DNA of 64,000 nucleotides, taken from IMG/VR virus record IMGVR_UViG_3300041411_000080, positions 124,001 to 188,000 of that record. One strand, 5' to 3'. Position numbers and translations under genes: made by a program. Of this stretch, positions 11,201 to 40,706 are shown piece after piece. How positions within the stretch are numbered: position 1 is the stretch's first letter; every line of letters starts with the position of its first letter. The notes under the pieces are model-generated. The model had not been told where the DNA came from and ran no database searches. It saw only the letters and a program-made list of their open reading frames with translations.

Positions 11201-11755
11201 TTAACCCCATGTCGCAGACAAGCGATGTTCAAGTTCGCGTGTCACGCCTTCTTCTGTATAGCGAATTGTTCCGGCTTCAAGATAGCGGGTCCATTGAGAG
11301 ACTGGAATCACCTCTACTTGAACAAGCGTCTTACCGATGTATGCATAGCTACCGGTCAGTGCTGTAAACTCATATTCAAAAGTGGTCCCAATAACTGGAA
11401 TCACTTCTTCAGAGAAAGATACATCACTTGGTCCAAATGTCATTCTTCGCGCCCGATTGATTTCGAGAGCGATGCTAGCCGGGGTGGGATCACCCATGAC
11501 CTTAATGCTAACTAGTGGTCCCAGACACCGGCGGTCTGAAAGCTCGAGACGACGGAATTCAAACCAGTCTTTGTGACTGGTTACTTTGTCAATCATCTCA
11601 ATGTAGCTTCGACCCGGTTCTACTTCCGTTGGAGAGAAGAACAAATCTTCAAAGGTAATGTACTCATCCTTCAGGTCAGGTCGGTTCTGGGATCGCCGGA
11701 CCAGTTCTACAAGTGCCTGACGAGAAGGCATGTTGTAGGGGAAACGATCGCTCAT
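11201..11755 (-). CDS. Putative virion structural protein with a C-terminal RYxExG repeat
   Basis: 184 aa; layout resembles the 29056 and 29933 ORFs (helix, then F/Y-x-R-L-D/E-L); ends RYLEAGTIRYTEEGVTRELE. Confidence 0.65.
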   Translation of the reverse strand: MSDRFPYNMPSRQALVELVRRSQNRPDLKDEYITFEDLFFSPTEVEPGRSYIEMIDKVTSHKDWFEFRRLELSDRRCLGPLVSIKVMGDPTPASIALEINRARRMTFGPSDVSFSEEVIPVIGTTFEYEFTALTGSYAYIGKTLVQVEVIPVSQWTRYLEAGTIRYTEEGVTRELEHRLSATWG

Positions 11756-26881: not shown

Positions 26882-29056
26882 ATGAGTAACGTATACTTTA
26901 ATATCTTTCGTGACGATACTATTAAATTGGTAAGGTCAGTTATTGTTAAGTTCAGTGAAACTGCGACTCAAGTCAATAATGGTCTTTACCAATTAACAGG
27001 TATTGAAGCCGATCCCCTGCGCCCTGAAACATGGAAGTACTACATGCACTTGGCGGGGGAGTACCATTCAACTGATGAAATGATGTACGTTAAGTCTGCT
27101 GACACACTCGAACAAATCGAGTTCACGAAAGCTAACCTAGAATTCCATCGCGCTACAGCTCGTGAGTACTACCCAGGTAGTACACTCTACAAGTCTCTAG
27201 CTCGTCAATATCCAAATCAAGTTGACCTAATTACTGGGATTCTTTATCCCATTGACATTCAAGTCGCAATCGATGCAGCTGATGGGAAGATCTTGTATCA
27301 CGACCCAGCATACGTTGAGCCTCAGGAAGACACGTTTATATTTGAACTACAAGATTGGGTTAACACATTCTATCTACGTTGGTACAACAAACAGTTTAAC
27401 ATCGTAGACGAGTTGTTTCACACAGCTTTCTTAGGTAACCTTTATTCCCGGATGGTACCCGCTATCATGGCAATGCGGTTAGCTAAAGCTAAGACTAATC
27501 AAGCCCATAGCTATCATATCCGTGAGTACTTGGCGTCTCATGAACATCTTGATGATTTCATCCCGTATCTCGATACCTATCAGATGCTGTGGCTTTATCG
27601 TAACATCGACTACTTACAACGTCATGCTGGTAACAAAAATACTTTCCAGCGTTTGGTTAAGAACATCCTGACTCATCGCGGTATTCCTATTCTGGAGTAT
27701 ACGCTTGAACAGAACTCTACCAACATGCTCCGGGATAATCTGGCACACGTTGAAATGGTTAAGCATGACATCAACTTCAATATCGTTCAGGAAGGGCAGG
27801 AGTCTGTGCCTGTATCCACAATCCTGACTCGTGAGCAGTTGTTGGCTCGTGATAACCCGTTGGTTGAATTTGATACAGAACGTGACATCATGCAAGAGAT
27901 GGGTTACTCCGCATCTAGTTCTTTGCCTACACGGGTATACGACTCTGAGGTAATTGACCGTTCGGTGTCTAACGTTCGTAGTCTACAATCGGTACTGTTG
28001 AATGAGTGGCTACAGCTGGCTTCCAGTGATCGCTACAGAGCGTTCGTTCAAATCCCTAACCCTAAGACGGGTGAGATGATGACGATGTCGGTAAAGGATG
28101 CTTACCTCGTTACCATGTACTGCTGGTTGAAGACTCGTGAAGTATTGCCTGAGTTCATTCCAAAGTTTACGGCATATGAAGTACTGTTGCCTAAGTCTCC
28201 TACATTCATGGAACTGCGGTGGATGTCTCCTAAGCGTATTATCCCTGATAAGGTGATTACCGCTATTCAGGATATTACCCCGCCGATGAGTAGCTATATC
28301 TCAACGGAACGTTTCTATTTGGATTGTGCTAAGGCACATGCCAACTACCTGAAACAATGGGAACTCTATTCGTTCCAAGAACACATGGTAGGACGCGGTT
28401 ACTGTGAGCAGATCGTTAAGATGCATTACATGAACCGACAGTGTACTTTGGTAGAGGGGCAGGTAACGTGGGAGGACTACTTTACATCGCAAGGCTTTAA
28501 CATCCTCGATATGTCTAACCCTGAAATGGAACAGCTTTGCCTTGATACCATCAACATCGCTACCGGTGCAAACTTGGTTAAGATCATTACCTTGGGTGAG
28601 ATCCAGCGAGAGCTTCTGCGTCTGATGTCTCGGATGTCTAGTTACATCGCTCAGTACCTGCGTAACGTTGAGTTCACTAAGTTCCACGTGTTGGGTATGG
28701 TGATGCCACGAGTTGGTGATTACTCCGCCCATTCGGAATCTGGTGATCTGGTACCAATCGTTAACGTTAACGTCCGTAACGTAGCTTCCTTGGGTAAGAC
28801 ACTTATCCCAATTAAGGAAGGTTCGATTACCCCATCGATTCTGTGGAGCTATCGTGGGTATGGTCGTTGGTGGATTGACCCATGTGTTAACATCGTTGAG
28901 ACGTCGTTCAAAGAGCATGCATATCCAATGCCTGTCTGCAATATCGGTGTAGGTGGAGTTAGTATCTCTGTACCTTCCAATCCAAACCCAGATGGGGATC
29001 TAGATTTCTATGATCTACCAACTGATCCTAACTGGCCTAAATTCGAGAAGCCATAA
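26882..29056 (+). CDS. Virion/baseplate protein (gp128-like)
   Basis: 724 aa; TWKYYMHLAGEYH, HSYHIREYLASH and LWLYRNI motifs; synteny. Confidence 0.7.
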   Translation: MSNVYFNIFRDDTIKLVRSVIVKFSETATQVNNGLYQLTGIEADPLRPETWKYYMHLAGEYHSTDEMMYVKSADTLEQIEFTKANLEFHRATAREYYPGSTLYKSLARQYPNQVDLITGILYPIDIQVAIDAADGKILYHDPAYVEPQEDTFIFELQDWVNTFYLRWYNKQFNIVDELFHTAFLGNLYSRMVPAIMAMRLAKAKTNQAHSYHIREYLASHEHLDDFIPYLDTYQMLWLYRNIDYLQRHAGNKNTFQRLVKNILTHRGIPILEYTLEQNSTNMLRDNLAHVEMVKHDINFNIVQEGQESVPVSTILTREQLLARDNPLVEFDTERDIMQEMGYSASSSLPTRVYDSEVIDRSVSNVRSLQSVLLNEWLQLASSDRYRAFVQIPNPKTGEMMTMSVKDAYLVTMYCWLKTREVLPEFIPKFTAYEVLLPKSPTFMELRWMSPKRIIPDKVITAIQDITPPMSSYISTERFYLDCAKAHANYLKQWELYSFQEHMVGRGYCEQIVKMHYMNRQCTLVEGQVTWEDYFTSQGFNILDMSNPEMEQLCLDTINIATGANLVKIITLGEIQRELLRLMSRMSSYIAQYLRNVEFTKFHVLGMVMPRVGDYSAHSESGDLVPIVNVNVRNVASLGKTLIPIKEGSITPSILWSYRGYGRWWIDPCVNIVETSFKEHAYPMPVCNIGVGGVSISVPSNPNPDGDLDFYDLPTDPNWPKFEKP

Positions 29057-29925
29057 TGCTAATGACTAGAGACTACTTGAAAGCCGACCCTTGGGACGCT
29101 CTCATTGCGCGTATAAACGACCTCTACCAAATCGAGCTGCAACCTTACACCACTAAGCTGATCGAGCTTCAGTCGCAGGGTGGGACACGTACCCGTGTGG
29201 TTATCGGTCCTAACCAAAGTGCCTCTGAGACAAACACTGCTCCTGCTGTAGAACGTACGGAATATTTCTACGATCGCTTGGATCTGGCAAGTTTCTTTAA
29301 AGGTGGAGTTAAACAAGTAGGTGGCTTTCAGCTGCCTACTGATACCTTCAAGATCTTGGATGCGATTAGTGAATTGAATGACATCACCTTCACACTGAAT
29401 GATTTCATGCATGTTCAGTATGATGCTTACGGTCAGACTTACACGCTCACGGCCAACCCTAAGTCAATGCGTTTTGTAGGTTCGGTTCAGTTCCAATTGG
29501 TTAACACCACCAAGCGACTATTGTCTGATCAAGGTAGCGTACGTGAGTTCCCTGATGCTAACCCATTTCCTTTGGGTGCTTCAGGAGATAAGCTAATCGC
29601 TCAGTACATGACATCAGGTTTTGACTTTACCGATGAACGTGAATTCTTGAAGACGCTAGATAAAGATTCTATTTGGCCTACCGGTAAGAAGCTTGCAGCA
29701 ATTCTACAGGACGTCACCAAACGTCCGTGGGTGTGCTCTGACACAGAAGTCGAGTGGAACATAGCCTACGAGGCTAAGAACGGTGAGGGGCGCTTAGAGG
29801 TGATCTACAACGGCATTGTATTGCCAAGGTTCTCTCCACGTAAAGATATCCGTCGGGTATTGGTATTGCGTACCAGTGAACTGAGTACTAACGTCGATGG
29901 CTATCTGCTGTTGCACTATAACTGA
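29056..29925 (+). CDS. Virion structural protein (gp127-like)
   Basis: 289 aa; YDRLDL motif; translationally coupled. Confidence 0.65.
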   Translation: MLMTRDYLKADPWDALIARINDLYQIELQPYTTKLIELQSQGGTRTRVVIGPNQSASETNTAPAVERTEYFYDRLDLASFFKGGVKQVGGFQLPTDTFKILDAISELNDITFTLNDFMHVQYDAYGQTYTLTANPKSMRFVGSVQFQLVNTTKRLLSDQGSVREFPDANPFPLGASGDKLIAQYMTSGFDFTDEREFLKTLDKDSIWPTGKKLAAILQDVTKRPWVCSDTEVEWNIAYEAKNGEGRLEVIYNGIVLPRFSPRKDIRRVLVLRTSELSTNVDGYLLLHYN

Positions 29926-38231: not shown

Positions 38232-38265
38232 ACCCAAGCATGATATAAATCTGAAATAAATTCTG
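38232..38265 (-). promoter_or_regulatory. Degenerate early promoter
   Basis: CAGAA-N13-TATATCAT; same spacing as the four canonical copies. Confidence 0.5.
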
Positions 38266-38281
38266 TTAAGCTATAAGACGA

Positions 38282-38314
38282 CATAAAACCCCTACCCGAA
38301 GGTAGGGGCCTATG
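38282..38314 (-). terminator. Terminator of the capsid transcript
   Basis: CATAAAA-CCCCTACC-cgaa-GGTAGGGG-CCTATG. Confidence 0.8.
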
Positions 38315-38322
38315 ACTTGGTA

Positions 38323-38409
38323 TTACCGCTCGGGTCCACGGGCTATCCCGCTTTCTTCGTACCTTAGACTTAAACCGTCTTCAGTATAGCGGGAACTACC
38401 CTCTCCATT
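38323..38409 (-). CDS. Putative readthrough extension of the major capsid protein (NGEGSSRYTEDGLSLRYEESGIARGPER*)
   Basis: In frame with the capsid TGA, no internal start codon, carries the RYxExG repeat seen in the 11201-11755 protein, ends just before the terminator. Confidence 0.6.
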   Translation of the reverse strand, partial: NGEGSSRYTEDGLSLRYEESGIARGPER

Positions 38410-40632
38410 TCATGGAGTGTTCAGACCATCAACAACTGGCTTGTTCCACTGCGAGTGACCCATTACTTCCTGGAAGCCTGTTACTTCAAATTCCAGTGCG
38501 AATGGAATGTTGTTGATGTGCAGGTTGAAAGGAATGGCTGCGATCTCGCGGGAGATCTGGTGACCGCCACGGCTGATCGGAAGATCGGCGATGATAGTCG
38601 ACACGTAGAAGAACTGACCGAAGCTCAGGATGTCGTTCTCTACCGGAGTCTTACGGGTTGGTACTACTACCAGCTTACCATCGAACAGTTCGTTGTTGGT
38701 CGACACGATGTCGTACTCGAGGTAAGCACCCAGGGTACGGTCGTCGCCTTTGGTCATCAGGTAGTTGGCGATCTCTTTGTCCGAGCAGAACAGGAACATT
38801 GGACGCTCATCTTGGTTGCCCGAGATTACTCGGAAAGCAGCTTCGATGTTCGAGTTACGGTATGCTGGGAACAGCGCACCTTTAACTTTGTTCAGGATAG
38901 CGGAGCAAACGTCGTCCCAACGGTCTTTCGACTTCAGGGTATCGATCATGTCAGGCAGGTGCATGCGTTCGAAGTAGTAGGTAGGACGCATTACTGCGGC
39001 CAGAGCACCTTCGTACACGTTGATCACTGGACGGTTGAAGCCGTTACCAGTCAGTTCACGCAGCTGAGCCAGGTAGTTCAACAGAGTCTTAACAGCGTTG
39101 TTGCTGTTACGAATGTTGGTGTTCACAGTCAGTGCTTTAACAACTTCGCCTGGACCTTCTTCTTCCATGGTGCTCAGTGGCAGAGTCACTGGAGCGTGCA
39201 TTGGGATTGGGTGACGGAATTGCAGAGCACGAGTTTGCAACAGGTGACCGCGCTGACGACGGTTAGTGTTGGTGAAACGGGTGTGCAGATCGAAACCAAC
39301 GATTTCCAGATCGGTGATCGAATCAACCAGAGTCTTACCAGCGCCAGTTTTGGTATCTACTGGACGACGGTCAGAGTTCAGGATAGCAGCAACTTCTACA
39401 TCGCCATTACCGAAACGAGAATCACCTTTCGAGGTGCTGATGTTACCGTTGAAGTCAACGCTCAGACGCAGTACCCATTCACGCTGGGCCAGTTCTGTCA
39501 TTGCAGCGGTTTGTACGCCGTCGATGGTACGGGTGATCGAACTTACGCTCAGATCATCAGTCCAGAAGTCGATACGAGCACCACGGGTATCGCCGATCAG
39601 GTCAGGTTGGAACACAGCACGTGGCATGCGGTCAACTTTGAACTTGATTACTTTACCTTGGAACTTAACGTACAGGTTCTTCAGACGACCAGCAGGGTCG
39701 ATGGTATCAGAAACTTCCAGCATGCCAGCCGAGATCAGCAGGTTAGCGTTCGAGTTACCGATCAGGTCAATACGAATACCAGGCTTCAGAGGAGCGGTTT
39801 CGATCGACAGGTTTTGTTCGTTAACGATGGTCTCAGCAGGAACCAGAGCAGGGTCAACGAAGAAGTCCAGGTTGGTACCAGCTGGATCGATCGCAGGGAT
39901 CAGATCAGTAGCGTTGTCGTCAAGAATCGACGGATCACGGTATGCTTCTACCATGTTCACTTCTTCGTTCTTCCAACGAGCACCGTTAACAGCGTGATGG
40001 ACGTCTTTCATTACAGCGATGTACGGCAGAACCTGAACTACACCACCCTCGATAGGGTTGATAACGGTAGTTGGGTAGATCCGCTCAGAGAACTCGTCCT
40101 GACGGGAAGCAGCCAGGTTATAACCAACGGTTACAACACGGAAGTCACGTTGCGATTTCTCGTTGTAGTTTTCCAGACCCATGGTCTTGGCGCCTTCAGC
40201 GTCAAACACTTGCAGGGAACCGGCAGGACCGTCGAATTTGTGTTCGATGGTTTTGATCGACTCGGTCGAAGGGATTACTTTCGACAGGCCGCGCAGAGCC
40301 TTGATGTACTGATCAGGGTTAGCAGCAGCGATGGTGCCCAGGAAGGCAGCAGTCAGCTGGTTTTCAGCAACGCGTTGATCTTCAGAGATAAACGCTTCAA
40401 AGCCGAGGTTAACGGCCATGGTACGCAGTTGCTTGTAGACGTTAGCGGCTTGACCGGCTTCATCCTTTTGACCGAACGATTCCAGACCTACAGTAGAGGC
40501 CAGACCAGCAGCGGTAGAGAACACACCGTCAGCCAGATCGTTTTCGAAGTTCAGCTTGGTAACAAATGCTTCCATGGAGAAGACTGGTTTATCTGTGGCG
40601 CTAGCCTTCAGAAGAGATTTCAAAGTTTTCAT
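38410..40632 (-). CDS. Major capsid protein (phiKZ gp120-like)
   Basis: About 740 aa with strong codon bias; propeptide with SME/GLE sites up to GLE-NYNE; YNLAASRQDEF and TNTNRRQRG motifs. Confidence 0.9.
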   Translation of the reverse strand: MKTLKSLLKASATDKPVFSMEAFVTKLNFENDLADGVFSTAAGLASTVGLESFGQKDEAGQAANVYKQLRTMAVNLGFEAFISEDQRVAENQLTAAFLGTIAAANPDQYIKALRGLSKVIPSTESIKTIEHKFDGPAGSLQVFDAEGAKTMGLENYNEKSQRDFRVVTVGYNLAASRQDEFSERIYPTTVINPIEGGVVQVLPYIAVMKDVHHAVNGARWKNEEVNMVEAYRDPSILDDNATDLIPAIDPAGTNLDFFVDPALVPAETIVNEQNLSIETAPLKPGIRIDLIGNSNANLLISAGMLEVSDTIDPAGRLKNLYVKFQGKVIKFKVDRMPRAVFQPDLIGDTRGARIDFWTDDLSVSSITRTIDGVQTAAMTELAQREWVLRLSVDFNGNISTSKGDSRFGNGDVEVAAILNSDRRPVDTKTGAGKTLVDSITDLEIVGFDLHTRFTNTNRRQRGHLLQTRALQFRHPIPMHAPVTLPLSTMEEEGPGEVVKALTVNTNIRNSNNAVKTLLNYLAQLRELTGNGFNRPVINVYEGALAAVMRPTYYFERMHLPDMIDTLKSKDRWDDVCSAILNKVKGALFPAYRNSNIEAAFRVISGNQDERPMFLFCSDKEIANYLMTKGDDRTLGAYLEYDIVSTNNELFDGKLVVVPTRKTPVENDILSFGQFFYVSTIIADLPISRGGHQISREIAAIPFNLHINNIPFALEFEVTGFQEVMGHSQWNKPVVDGLNTP

Positions 40633-40706
40633 CAATTAATTTCCTACGCAGGATGGGTTTTGGTTTTAAACGAGTATCTATTGTCCAGGACTATTTTTCA
40701 CCGGAA

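Follow-up and report, generated by a model that had tools for sequence, protein, structure and literature searches.

The locus described here lies in a 64,000-nucleotide stretch of DNA (hereafter the window) from the dsDNA genome of a giant, nucleus-forming Pseudomonas phage (320,858 bp, 321 kb). The minus strand of the window carries, at positions 38413..40635, the open reading frame of the major capsid protein (taken from the ORF listing with Pfam and phrog support, its true start being unchecked), which matches PhiKZ_MCP (Pfam PF25620, E = 1e-220) as well as phrog_3231 and is a homologue of phiKZ gp120 and 201phi2-1 gp200. The 3' end of this frame reads AAC ACT CCA TGA A, with the TGA at 38412-38410 on the minus strand, and it is this UGA with its following A (stop codon 38410..38412) that we propose, from the sequence and its relatives, as a site of readthrough. 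The same frame stays open past the stop for 28 codons (38326..38409, minus strand), which encode a G-x-G lead and then 2.5 copies of an eight-residue unit R-x-x-E-[D/N/S]-G-x-x, the last unit being R-G-P-E-R here where the usual form is R-R-L-E-R, and is closed by a TAA at 38323..38325 (minus strand). A terminator-like hairpin with a T run follows at 38285..38310 (minus strand; 8 G+C-rich pairs in the fold, TTCG loop) and is likely the 3' end of the capsid mRNA. The hairpin is missing from the output of a simple terminator scan; we accept it as a terminator nonetheless because of its fold and because of where RNA contigs end (see below). There is no in-frame ATG, GTG or TTG among the 28 codons, and the other two frames past the TGA close early, after MERVVPAILKTV and after WRG. 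The original prediction, made from sequence alone, had claimed the capsid identity, the end of the ORF, the 28 sense codons with their TAA and a terminator behind it, the absence of an in-frame start and the shortness of the other frames, and all of these claims held.

The length of the tail is not used as evidence in what follows, since 28 or more open codons past the stop are found for 27% of the ORFs of at least 150 aa in this genome. UGA is also an ordinary stop here, as TGA ends 78 of the 298 long ORFs (26%). The weight of the evidence therefore rests on comparison with relatives and not on the window alone.

That the extension lies on the capsid mRNA is shown by RNA contigs in a phiKZ-like genome, which continue across both stop and extension and break off directly behind the corresponding hairpin, in one case with an adapter joined on. 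These are contigs assembled from RNA runs, and they mark the end of the mRNA rather than its translation.

Ten named phages of the phiKZ type, as well as 17 contigs from IMG/VR, have the same arrangement: past the TGA the frame stays open for 24-30 codons, which carry the motif. A second IMG/VR scan seeded with distant capsids gave just one more contig. The capsid stop is TGA in 22 of 22 distinct tail-bearing phiKZ-like capsid genes (a 21-sequence set plus Noxifer, at 59% capsid identity), and TAA in 13 of 13 relatives without the tail (L026, L029-L031, L033, L049, LucasX, RAY, DT01, RSL2, FBKp24, SPN3US and Yong MS32). The second stop, at the end of the tail, varies over the 21 tails (14 TAA, 5 TGA and 2 TAG). 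On the capsid tree the stop state switches four times, at least three of these switches being forced by well-supported branches, and each switch coincides with gain or loss of the long in-frame ORF. It is clear that frame, UGA and motif are conserved and that stop type and tail change together.

One could suppose that the TGA is a recent nonsense mutation or sequencing error in a once longer capsid gene, whose tail is now decaying. Nothing speaks for this beyond the open frame itself, whereas purifying selection acts on the tail (see below), the same TGA recurs in 22 distinct genomes whose synonymous divergence is about 0.6, no relative has a sense codon at the position of the TGA and the phiKZ capsid models end at residue 747. 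We regard this explanation as all but ruled out. The original prediction had named a sense codon in relatives as grounds for refutation and conservation of TGA, open frame and motif as a check; the former was met by no relative and the latter held in all 22 distinct sequences.

The substitution pattern in the tail is that of a protein-coding sequence. Its dN/dS is 0.39 in frame 0 as compared to 0.84 and 1.13 in the other two frames, with a value of 0.19 for the last 60 capsid codons, aligned as a control. Nine independent sister pairs give a pS of 0.42, a pN of 0.20 and a pN/pS of 0.48 in frame 0 (p = 2.5e-8). Variation is greatest at third codon positions, indels come in threes, and a wide range of synonymous codons serves for the conserved Arg, Gly, Glu and Asp residues, one conserved Arg being written AGG, AGA, CGA, CGG and CGT among the relatives. 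Stops interrupt frame +1 in 20 of the 21 tails and frame +2 in 17 of the 21, and conservation starts at the very first codons past the TGA. Purifying selection on the tail at the protein level in frame 0 is thus shown, and the synonymous-biased substitution that had been put forward as a check held in this frame only. Selection demonstrates translation of this frame but does not establish fusion with the capsid protein.

With this in mind, we considered that the 24-30 codons might be translated separately, by non-canonical initiation or reinitiation, and that the free peptide might cap or regulate polymerisation of the DUF7941 protein discussed below. Such a reading is consistent with selection, which proves translation of the frame and not fusion, and in one subgroup there are G-rich, Shine-Dalgarno-like strings 3' of the stop. 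Against it, 13 of the 21 tails have no ATG, GTG or TTG and in the remainder, which have one, its position varies; conservation begins immediately after the stop; and a separate gene has no need of an upstream TGA, yet the TGA is invariant and is TAA whenever the tail is absent. A conserved start codon with a ribosome-binding site, as would befit a tail that is its own gene, was not found, and the phiKZ RefSeq record annotates nothing here. Separate translation therefore seems unlikely. A CDS annotated in the +1 frame of Viktualia was also tried as a candidate and rejected, as this frame is interrupted early on in the window as well as in phiKZ and D6 and has the dN/dS of 0.84 given above.

A further possibility is that conservation here reflects an element acting as RNA or DNA (a 3' UTR structure, a small RNA, or part of a terminator or promoter) in which the open frame is incidental. 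In its favour, four short G/C strings with the capacity to pair (GGG/CCG/CGG/CCC) show no variation, not even at third positions of codons whose amino acid varies, and the stretch in the window, terminator hairpin included, folds with a z-score of −3.1. Set against this, RNAalifold gives a covariation term of −0.11, the pairs of the putative downstream stem never varying, an Rfam search of the extension returned sub-threshold noise alone, and the indels in threes and the synonymous codon diversity are not those of an RNA element. Moreover, dN/dS falls clearly below 1 in frame 0 only (0.39), and the protein tail elsewhere in the genome that matches the extension is written in other codons. As a sole explanation an RNA element is very improbable, although one may coexist with the coding function as a stimulator of readthrough.

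The manner in which the UGA would be decoded was considered next to the tRNA content. This genome encodes tRNAs for Tyr, Asn and Trp(CCA) only, the last of which is near-cognate for UGA. Special decoding of the UGA, whether as selenocysteine, by a phage suppressor tRNA or under an altered code, could draw on this tRNA-Trp(CCA). However, it is present in the window phage only among the six genomes checked, the five relatives being without it; no tRNA with a UCA anticodon was found in this genome or in the five relatives; and neither Rfam nor RNAalifold gave a SECIS-like match or a conserved hairpin beside the UGA. The use of UGA as an ordinary stop in this genome likewise speaks against it. Special decoding is, in our judgement, very unlikely.

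Ordinary readthrough of the UGA is the route by which we think the tail is probably translated, with the caution that this is inferred and the extended protein has not been seen. The base after the TGA is A in 15 of the genes, G in 6 and C in Noxifer. In E. coli, UGA-A ranks as a context of no more than moderate weakness, the weakest being UGA-C, so the description of UGA-A as leaky in the original prediction is corrected to moderately weak. No conserved readthrough-stimulating context has been shown, as the fourth base varies and the stem is without covariation, and the literature searched holds no report of a peptide, band or footprint from the extension. The programmed UGA readthrough that had been predicted is accordingly supported by comparison of genomes, while its product is unseen and its rate unknown.

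The peptide encoded by the tail has a single partner in the genome. The two-unit motif pattern (R-x-x-E-[D/N]-G-x-x) occurs in exactly two places in the six frames of the 320,858-bp genome, where shuffles lead one to expect 0.1-0.8, and these places are the capsid tail and the C-terminus of a 184-aa homologue of phiKZ gp143 and 201phi2-1 gp228 (11201..11755, minus strand). The latter is a virion protein and "lysis regulator", built from an N-terminal domain of the DUF7941 type and a flexible tail behind it. The match to this protein had been predicted and held. The repeat shared with the capsid extension lies in the C-terminal tail of the homologue (residues 157-184, 11204..11287, minus strand), and the two places differ in their codons. 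All gp143 homologues end in this repeat, and a profile of gp143 picks up the capsid extension in another genome with E = 0.007. The gp143 tail is present also in phages that have no capsid tail, which makes the capsid tail an accessory feature. The gene for gp143 adjoins that for the gp144 endolysin.

An AF2 model of the 184-aa protein has a pLDDT of about 90 or above at residues 11-150 and below 50 at residues 162-184. The sole significant PDB match from Foldseek is 9xqd_0, a phiKZ peripheral baseplate chain (E = 7e-7, TM 0.71), whose 150 residues equal the modelled length of the gp127 N-terminal domain, and the globular domain of the gp143 homologue is thereby predicted to share the fold of phiKZ gp127. 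Sequence searches of the PDB gave no chain matching the phiKZ extension or gp143, and Pfam and the other profile libraries searched gave no family, and no DUF7941 match, for the 184-aa protein or its tail. The assignment of gp143 to the DUF7941 family is that of a 2026 preprint on Goslar (10.64898/2026.04.21.720040), in which members of the family are reported to form head-to-tail polymers, each subunit being predicted to dock by its flexible tail on the N-terminal domain of its neighbour (10.64898/2026.04.21.720040). The filaments so formed are placed at the peripheral baseplate and not at the head (10.64898/2026.04.21.720040), and neither readthrough nor the capsid is mentioned in that work (10.64898/2026.04.21.720040).

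The same arrangement with a different peptide is found in E. coli phage Goslar, where the capsid gene ends in TGA-A and is followed by 28 in-frame codons and then a terminator. The core of this extension aligns with the C-terminal tail of gp23 from the same phage at 10 identities in 19 residues (E = 4e-6); gp23 is a 180-aa DUF7941 protein that is very abundant in the virion at about 2140 copies (10.64898/2026.04.21.720040). A degenerate DNA pattern for the seven shared residues occurs in exactly two places in the 237-kb Goslar genome, namely the capsid tail and the gp23 tail, and 4 of the 7 codons differ synonymously between them. The three substitutions seen here among three Goslar-like genomes are each synonymous; a scan seeded with Goslar found just near-identical genomes. 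The neighbour of gp23 is annotated as a putative peptidoglycan-domain protein similar to lytic transglycosylase, to be compared with the position of gp143 beside the gp144 endolysin. Goslar is thus an independent replicate of the match between capsid tail and DUF7941 tail with an unrelated peptide, and the match is shown in two distant lineages.

The published structures of the phiKZ capsid bear on where such a tail could be. The C-terminal arm of the capsid protein (residues 728-747) sits at the capsomer centre, the arms form a six-helix bundle with a 9-Å pore, and in pentamers the arm contacts gp244, on the outer surface. The published models stop at residue 747, which means that an extended form must be in the minority or disordered.

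We propose that a few ribosomes read through the capsid UGA, most likely through near-cognate decoding by tRNA-Trp, and would go on for 28 codons to the TAA just ahead of the terminator, such that a minority of capsid subunits would gain a flexible C-terminal tail of roughly 3 kDa. Given the shared repeat and the docking of tails in DUF7941 chains, the capsid tail would imitate the DUF7941 tail and may act as a docking site or seed for subunits of the gp143 type on the outside of the capsomer centre, with the leakiness of the stop setting the number of anchor sites per head. If the tail is translated, we favour by a modest margin a function in which it binds the N-terminal domain of the DUF7941 protein, and this is inferred without binding data. 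As for the reading as a whole, in which UGA readthrough equips a minority of capsid subunits with a docking peptide of the DUF7941 kind, the balance in our view tips in its favour, there being no direct data on either the protein or its binding. The original prediction had guessed at a docking tag for accessory fibres or decorations, and this guess now has an independent basis in the assignment of gp143 to DUF7941 and in Goslar, with the binding itself inferred.

It is also possible, though we consider it fairly unlikely, that readthrough is real and the partner or role is another one, the shared peptide binding the holin system (thereby tying lysis timing to capsid output), the docking machinery of the phage nucleus, a chaperone or a protease, or plugging the pore at the hexamer centre. 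In support of this, gp143 is described as a cytoplasmic holin regulator that alters holin timing in E. coli and Pseudomonas, and by TnSeq it is not essential; the six-helix bundle of the capsid arms does have its 9-Å pore; the DUF7941 filaments of the preprint are anchored at the baseplate; and gp143 is not listed in the phiKZ structural atlas. On the other hand, in the sole available model the DUF7941 tail is the very part that docks on the next subunit, the published AF3 model has gp143 holding the holin by its first globular domain and not by its tail, and the replicate in Goslar involves gp23, an abundant virion protein.

Returning to capsid tails that dock DUF7941 proteins, a bolder reading is that the error rate at a stop codon serves as a counting device in chimalliviruses. 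Readthrough subunits would seed chains of the gp143 or gp23 type so that the head as well as the baseplate bears a cloud of filaments, and, because gp143 also tunes the holin, new capsids drawing off free gp143 would tie lysis timing to head production. We offer this only tentatively and would sooner expect it to fail than to hold.

Were the proposal true, model phages with capsids solved at 3.5 Å would have an unannotated protein form, and a concrete point of attachment would be at hand for DUF7941 proteins, which are very abundant and whose location in the virion is not settled. The proposal may also help to explain how gp143 can be both a virion protein and a lysis regulator. A change of one codon should then tune the anchor sites per head from none to all, giving an experimental and engineering handle. 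The signature itself, a stop type that co-varies with a conserved in-frame ORF whose peptide is copied elsewhere in the genome, can be screened for in phage genomes.

Readthrough of a coat stop to make a minor capsid protein is textbook knowledge for Q-beta and some plant viruses. We found no case for a tailed dsDNA phage, including phiKZ, 201phi2-1, PhiPA3 and Goslar, in the literature searched, in agreement with the original prediction, whose author was not aware of a description for phiKZ-like phages. The closest likeness is the A1 protein of Q-beta, which arises by UGA readthrough of the coat gene as a few per cent of ribosomes insert Trp: in both systems the gene of the major coat protein ends in a UGA that is leaky, or here is proposed to be, and the longer in-frame form is, or here would be, a minor, surface-exposed subunit. 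Q-beta, however, is an ssRNA phage whose extension is a 196-residue globular domain needed for infectivity, while here a 321-kb dsDNA phage has a flexible tail of 24-30 residues that copies the tail of another virion protein. Luteoviruses and poleroviruses likewise read through the coat stop to give a minor subunit with an exposed extension that mediates interaction, but these viruses infect eukaryotes, have RNA genomes and read through a UAG into a large domain.

Among dsDNA tailed phages, T7 gene 10A/10B (−1) and Cps and Tsh of Listeria phage PSA (+1) make a minority, C-terminally longer capsid form by recoding, as is proposed here, with the difference that they shift frame at slippery sites; in the present case the ribosome would stay in frame and the stop codon itself would be the signal. 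Ig-like domains are reportedly joined to phage structural proteins by recoding, through frameshifts (Fraser et al., 2006). In one relative, L028, the TGA of the capsid gene leads into an in-frame ORF with a Big_2 domain at its start, although the ORF has an ATG as its third codon and may thus be a gene of its own. The logic of an optional surface module would be the same as in the Ig-like cases, those described using frameshifts instead. With respect to the polymerisation of DUF7941 proteins (10.64898/2026.04.21.720040), the likeness is that the capsid tail resembles the flexible C-terminal tail of the short DUF7941 protein encoded by the respective phage, gp143 for phiKZ and gp23 for Goslar, and the difference is that the filaments of the preprint are anchored at the baseplate, such that a copy of the tail borne on the capsid would be a second, undescribed anchor.

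The window covers positions 124001-188000 of the 320,858-bp genome of a phiKZ-like jumbo phage. Its major capsid gene lies on the minus strand at 38410-40635 (Pfam PhiKZ_MCP, E = 1e-220; phrog_3231) and ends in ...Thr-Pro-TGA-A, beyond which another 28 sense codons lie in frame before a TAA at 38325-38323. Next comes a G+C-rich hairpin of 8 bp, looped by TTCG, and then a T run. ATG, GTG and TTG are all absent from the 28 codons, and the two alternative frames close after 12 and 3 codons. Length alone does not set the open stretch apart, since 27% of the ORFs of at least 150 aa in this genome have one. The original prediction described this arrangement correctly in every detail, and the observation is confirmed; its interpretation, that UGA readthrough produces a minority of capsid subunits carrying a tag, is supported, with readthrough inferred and the extended protein itself not seen. 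A 6-bp hairpin enclosing the UGA (CUCCAU-GAA-AUGGAG, 38403-38417, minus strand) occurs in the window only and is not conserved in relatives.

The extension is conserved well beyond this genome, whose closest GenBank phages are Viktualia, 201phi2-1 and Phabio. All nine named relatives compared (these three, PhiPA3, PS119XW, Psa21, D6, RVTF4 and the phiKZ strain KTN4) have a capsid gene ending in TGA plus a purine, then 26-30 open in-frame codons up to just before the terminator. It is the peptide itself that is conserved, beyond the mere open frame, with a short G-x-G or P-G lead followed by 2.5 copies of an 8-residue unit, R-x-x-E-[D/N]-G-x-x. With IMG/VR contigs included the set comprises 21 distinct sequences, or 22 with Noxifer (59% capsid identity). 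The phiKZ RefSeq record has no annotated feature in this interval, and our search of the literature on readthrough in phiKZ-like and jumbo phages, phiKZ ribosome profiling and DUF7941 found no description of it. The GenBank record of Viktualia does annotate a hypothetical protein in the +1 frame spanning the capsid stop and extension (L001:1967-2065); we rejected this as a real gene given that in the window, phiKZ and D6 this frame soon breaks off, and the annotation is probably a gene caller's response to the conserved open region.

The extension codes for protein in the frame of the capsid gene. Its pooled Nei-Gojobori dN/dS is 0.39 in frame 0 and 0.84 and 1.13 in the other frames, compared with 0.19 for the last 60 capsid codons, and variation is highest at third codon positions. 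Over 9 phylogenetically independent sister pairs, pS is 0.42 and pN 0.20 (Fisher p = 2.5e-8). All synonymous codons are in use for the conserved Gly, Glu and Asp, one conserved Arg is spelled AGG, AGA, CGA, CGG or CGT among relatives, and indels come in multiples of three. Stops interrupt frame +1 in 20 of the 21 sequences and frame +2 in 17 of 21, while 13 of 21 lack a canonical start codon throughout. Against the nearest relative, L010, the window differs at 21 of 660 bases (2 residues) in the last 220 capsid codons and at 23 of 84 bases (12 of 28 residues) in the extension, a divergence exceeding by eye, without a count, that of the downstream non-coding DNA. The motif positions are kept, with the changes falling between them.

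The identity of the capsid stop follows the presence of the tail. This first stop is TGA in 22 of 22 tail-bearing sequences, while the second stop, that of the extension itself, is TAA in 14, TGA in 5 and TAG in 2, which means that unconstrained stop codons drift freely at this divergence; TGA ends 78 of the 298 long ORFs of the window phage. Capsid genes of the same family without a tail all end in TAA (the compared sequences L026, L029-L031, L033 and L049, and LucasX, RAY, DT01, RSL2, FBKp24, SPN3US and Vibrio phage Yong MS32). Mapped on a maximum-likelihood tree built from 35 capsid C-terminal domains, the stop switches state 4 times, of which at least 3 are forced by well-supported branches, and each time a long in-frame ORF is gained or lost in step. 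One of the four is in L028 (IMGVR_UViG_3300043122_000192, 1972-2583), where ...TTTP-TGA-A precedes 203 in-frame codons beginning with a Big_2 immunoglobulin-like domain (E = 4e-9), a domain type that is a typical optional module of capsid surfaces; its nearest relatives have TAA and no such ORF. With an ATG at its third codon, this ORF could possibly be a separate gene. A leaky stop kept where a conserved in-frame ORF follows, and the tightest stop elsewhere, is the hallmark of programmed readthrough, which is itself inferred here.

RNA runs holding a phiKZ-like genome give contigs unbroken through the capsid stop and extension that terminate just past the hairpin, one run still showing the sequencing adapter there; being assembled contigs, these have no bearing on translation. 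The analysis found neither a suppressor tRNA nor a SECIS-like element, and no hint of an altered code; the simplest route would be near-cognate decoding of UGA, classically by tRNA-Trp. The phage does encode a tRNA-Trp(CCA), a near-cognate reader of UGA, outside the window (G000:C1:310449-310524, next to tRNA-Tyr and tRNA-Asn; D-stem pair 11:24 C-G). It can be no more than a local enhancer, being absent from Viktualia, 201phi2-1, Phabio, PhiPA3 and KTN4, five relatives that have the same tail. Within the extension, four short G/C strings hardly vary, third positions of codons with a changing amino acid included, and they can pair in a stem beginning about 10 nt past the UGA; the pairs never vary, hence there is no covariation. 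Taken as a whole, the evidence makes it likely that readthrough yields the extension fused to the capsid protein, with no extended protein, rate or inserted residue seen. Beyond the gene, TTTATG(C/T)CGT directly follows every capsid terminator hairpin (38278-38287, minus strand), and an A/T-rich motif of ATCTATAT type lies about 35-50 nt further (38239-38252, minus strand). Both occupy the same places in L001-L034, L067, L069 and L081 and are kept in very distant relatives, Goslar and RAY included; by appearance they might be promoter or start-site motifs of the next gene.

The two-unit motif occurs at only 2 sites in all six frames of the genome, namely the extension and the C-terminus of a 184-aa protein (11201-11755, minus strand) homologous to phiKZ gp143 and 201phi2-1 gp228. 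Its gene adjoins that of the endolysin, and it is annotated as a virion protein detected by mass spectrometry. The same repeat closes every gp143 homologue, and a search with the family profile matches another genome's capsid extension (E = 0.007). Between the window and L010 genomes, the gp143 homologues share only 84% identity. In one paper gp143 is presented as a holin regulator acting in the cytoplasm, and TnSeq finds it non-essential. A Goslar structure preprint (10.64898/2026.04.21.720040) assigns it to the chimallivirus-specific DUF7941 family, reporting that purified Goslar gp22 forms filaments, that AlphaFold predicts head-to-tail chains in which a flexible linker or tail docks on the next subunit's N-terminal domain, and that gp23, an N-terminal domain plus linker, is present at ~2140 copies per virion. 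Our AF2 model of the window homologue, confidently globular over residues 11-150 with a motif-bearing tail of pLDDT < 50, agrees with this description. Its sole significant PDB structural match is a 150-residue chain from the outer peripheral baseplate of phiKZ (E = 7e-7, TM 0.71), which likely corresponds to the gp127 N-terminal domain of the preprint. The gp143 profile also has a weak match (E = 0.006) in a 289-aa ORF at 29056-29925 (plus strand), probably a gp127-type DUF7941 protein; KRLLSDQGSVREF, a single degenerate copy of the tail-motif unit, opens its linker. The genome of L049, with a TAA capsid stop and no tail, carries two gp143 paralogues (L076 and L078), the motif being intact in one and degenerate in the other.

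Residues 728-747 of gp120, the final ones before the stop, make up a C-terminal arm that in the phiKZ capsid structure (3.5 Å) forms six-helix bundles ringing a 9-Å pore at hexamer centres; in pentamers the arm touches gp244, which tops the capsomer on the outer surface. This would place a tail on residue 747 at the capsomer centre, and most likely on the outside, as inferred from a structure without the tail. No residue past 747 is built in the capsid models, so the extended form must be disordered or limited to a minority of subunits, which is what readthrough predicts. The full model, in which DUF7941 subunits would dock on the readthrough tail, seems to us modestly favored, binding being inferred. 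Against it, DUF7941 filaments are anchored on the baseplate in the Goslar preprint (10.64898/2026.04.21.720040), gp143 has no entry in the phiKZ structural atlas, and phages without a capsid tail still keep the gp143 tail, so that a capsid anchor would be an accessory rather than a necessity.

Goslar itself provides an independent case. Its capsid is distant from that of the window (36% identity between Goslar and RAY, about 30% between RAY and the window), and its gene too has a TGA-A ending, with 28 in-frame codons beyond it and then a terminator; the encoded peptide has nothing in common with the phiKZ motif. Similarity is found instead between its core and the C-terminal tail of gp23 from the same phage (10 of 19 residues identical, E = 4e-6). 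As a degenerate DNA pattern, the seven shared residues occur at exactly 2 sites in the 237-kb genome, the extension and the gp23 tail, with 4 of the 7 codons differing synonymously between the copies, and all three substitutions in the extension among three Goslar-like genomes are synonymous. Translation and binding are both inferred; what we regard as the strongest evidence that the extension is translated, and for its role, is that in two lineages with different tail peptides the capsid tail after the UGA tracks the tail of each phage's own short DUF7941 protein.
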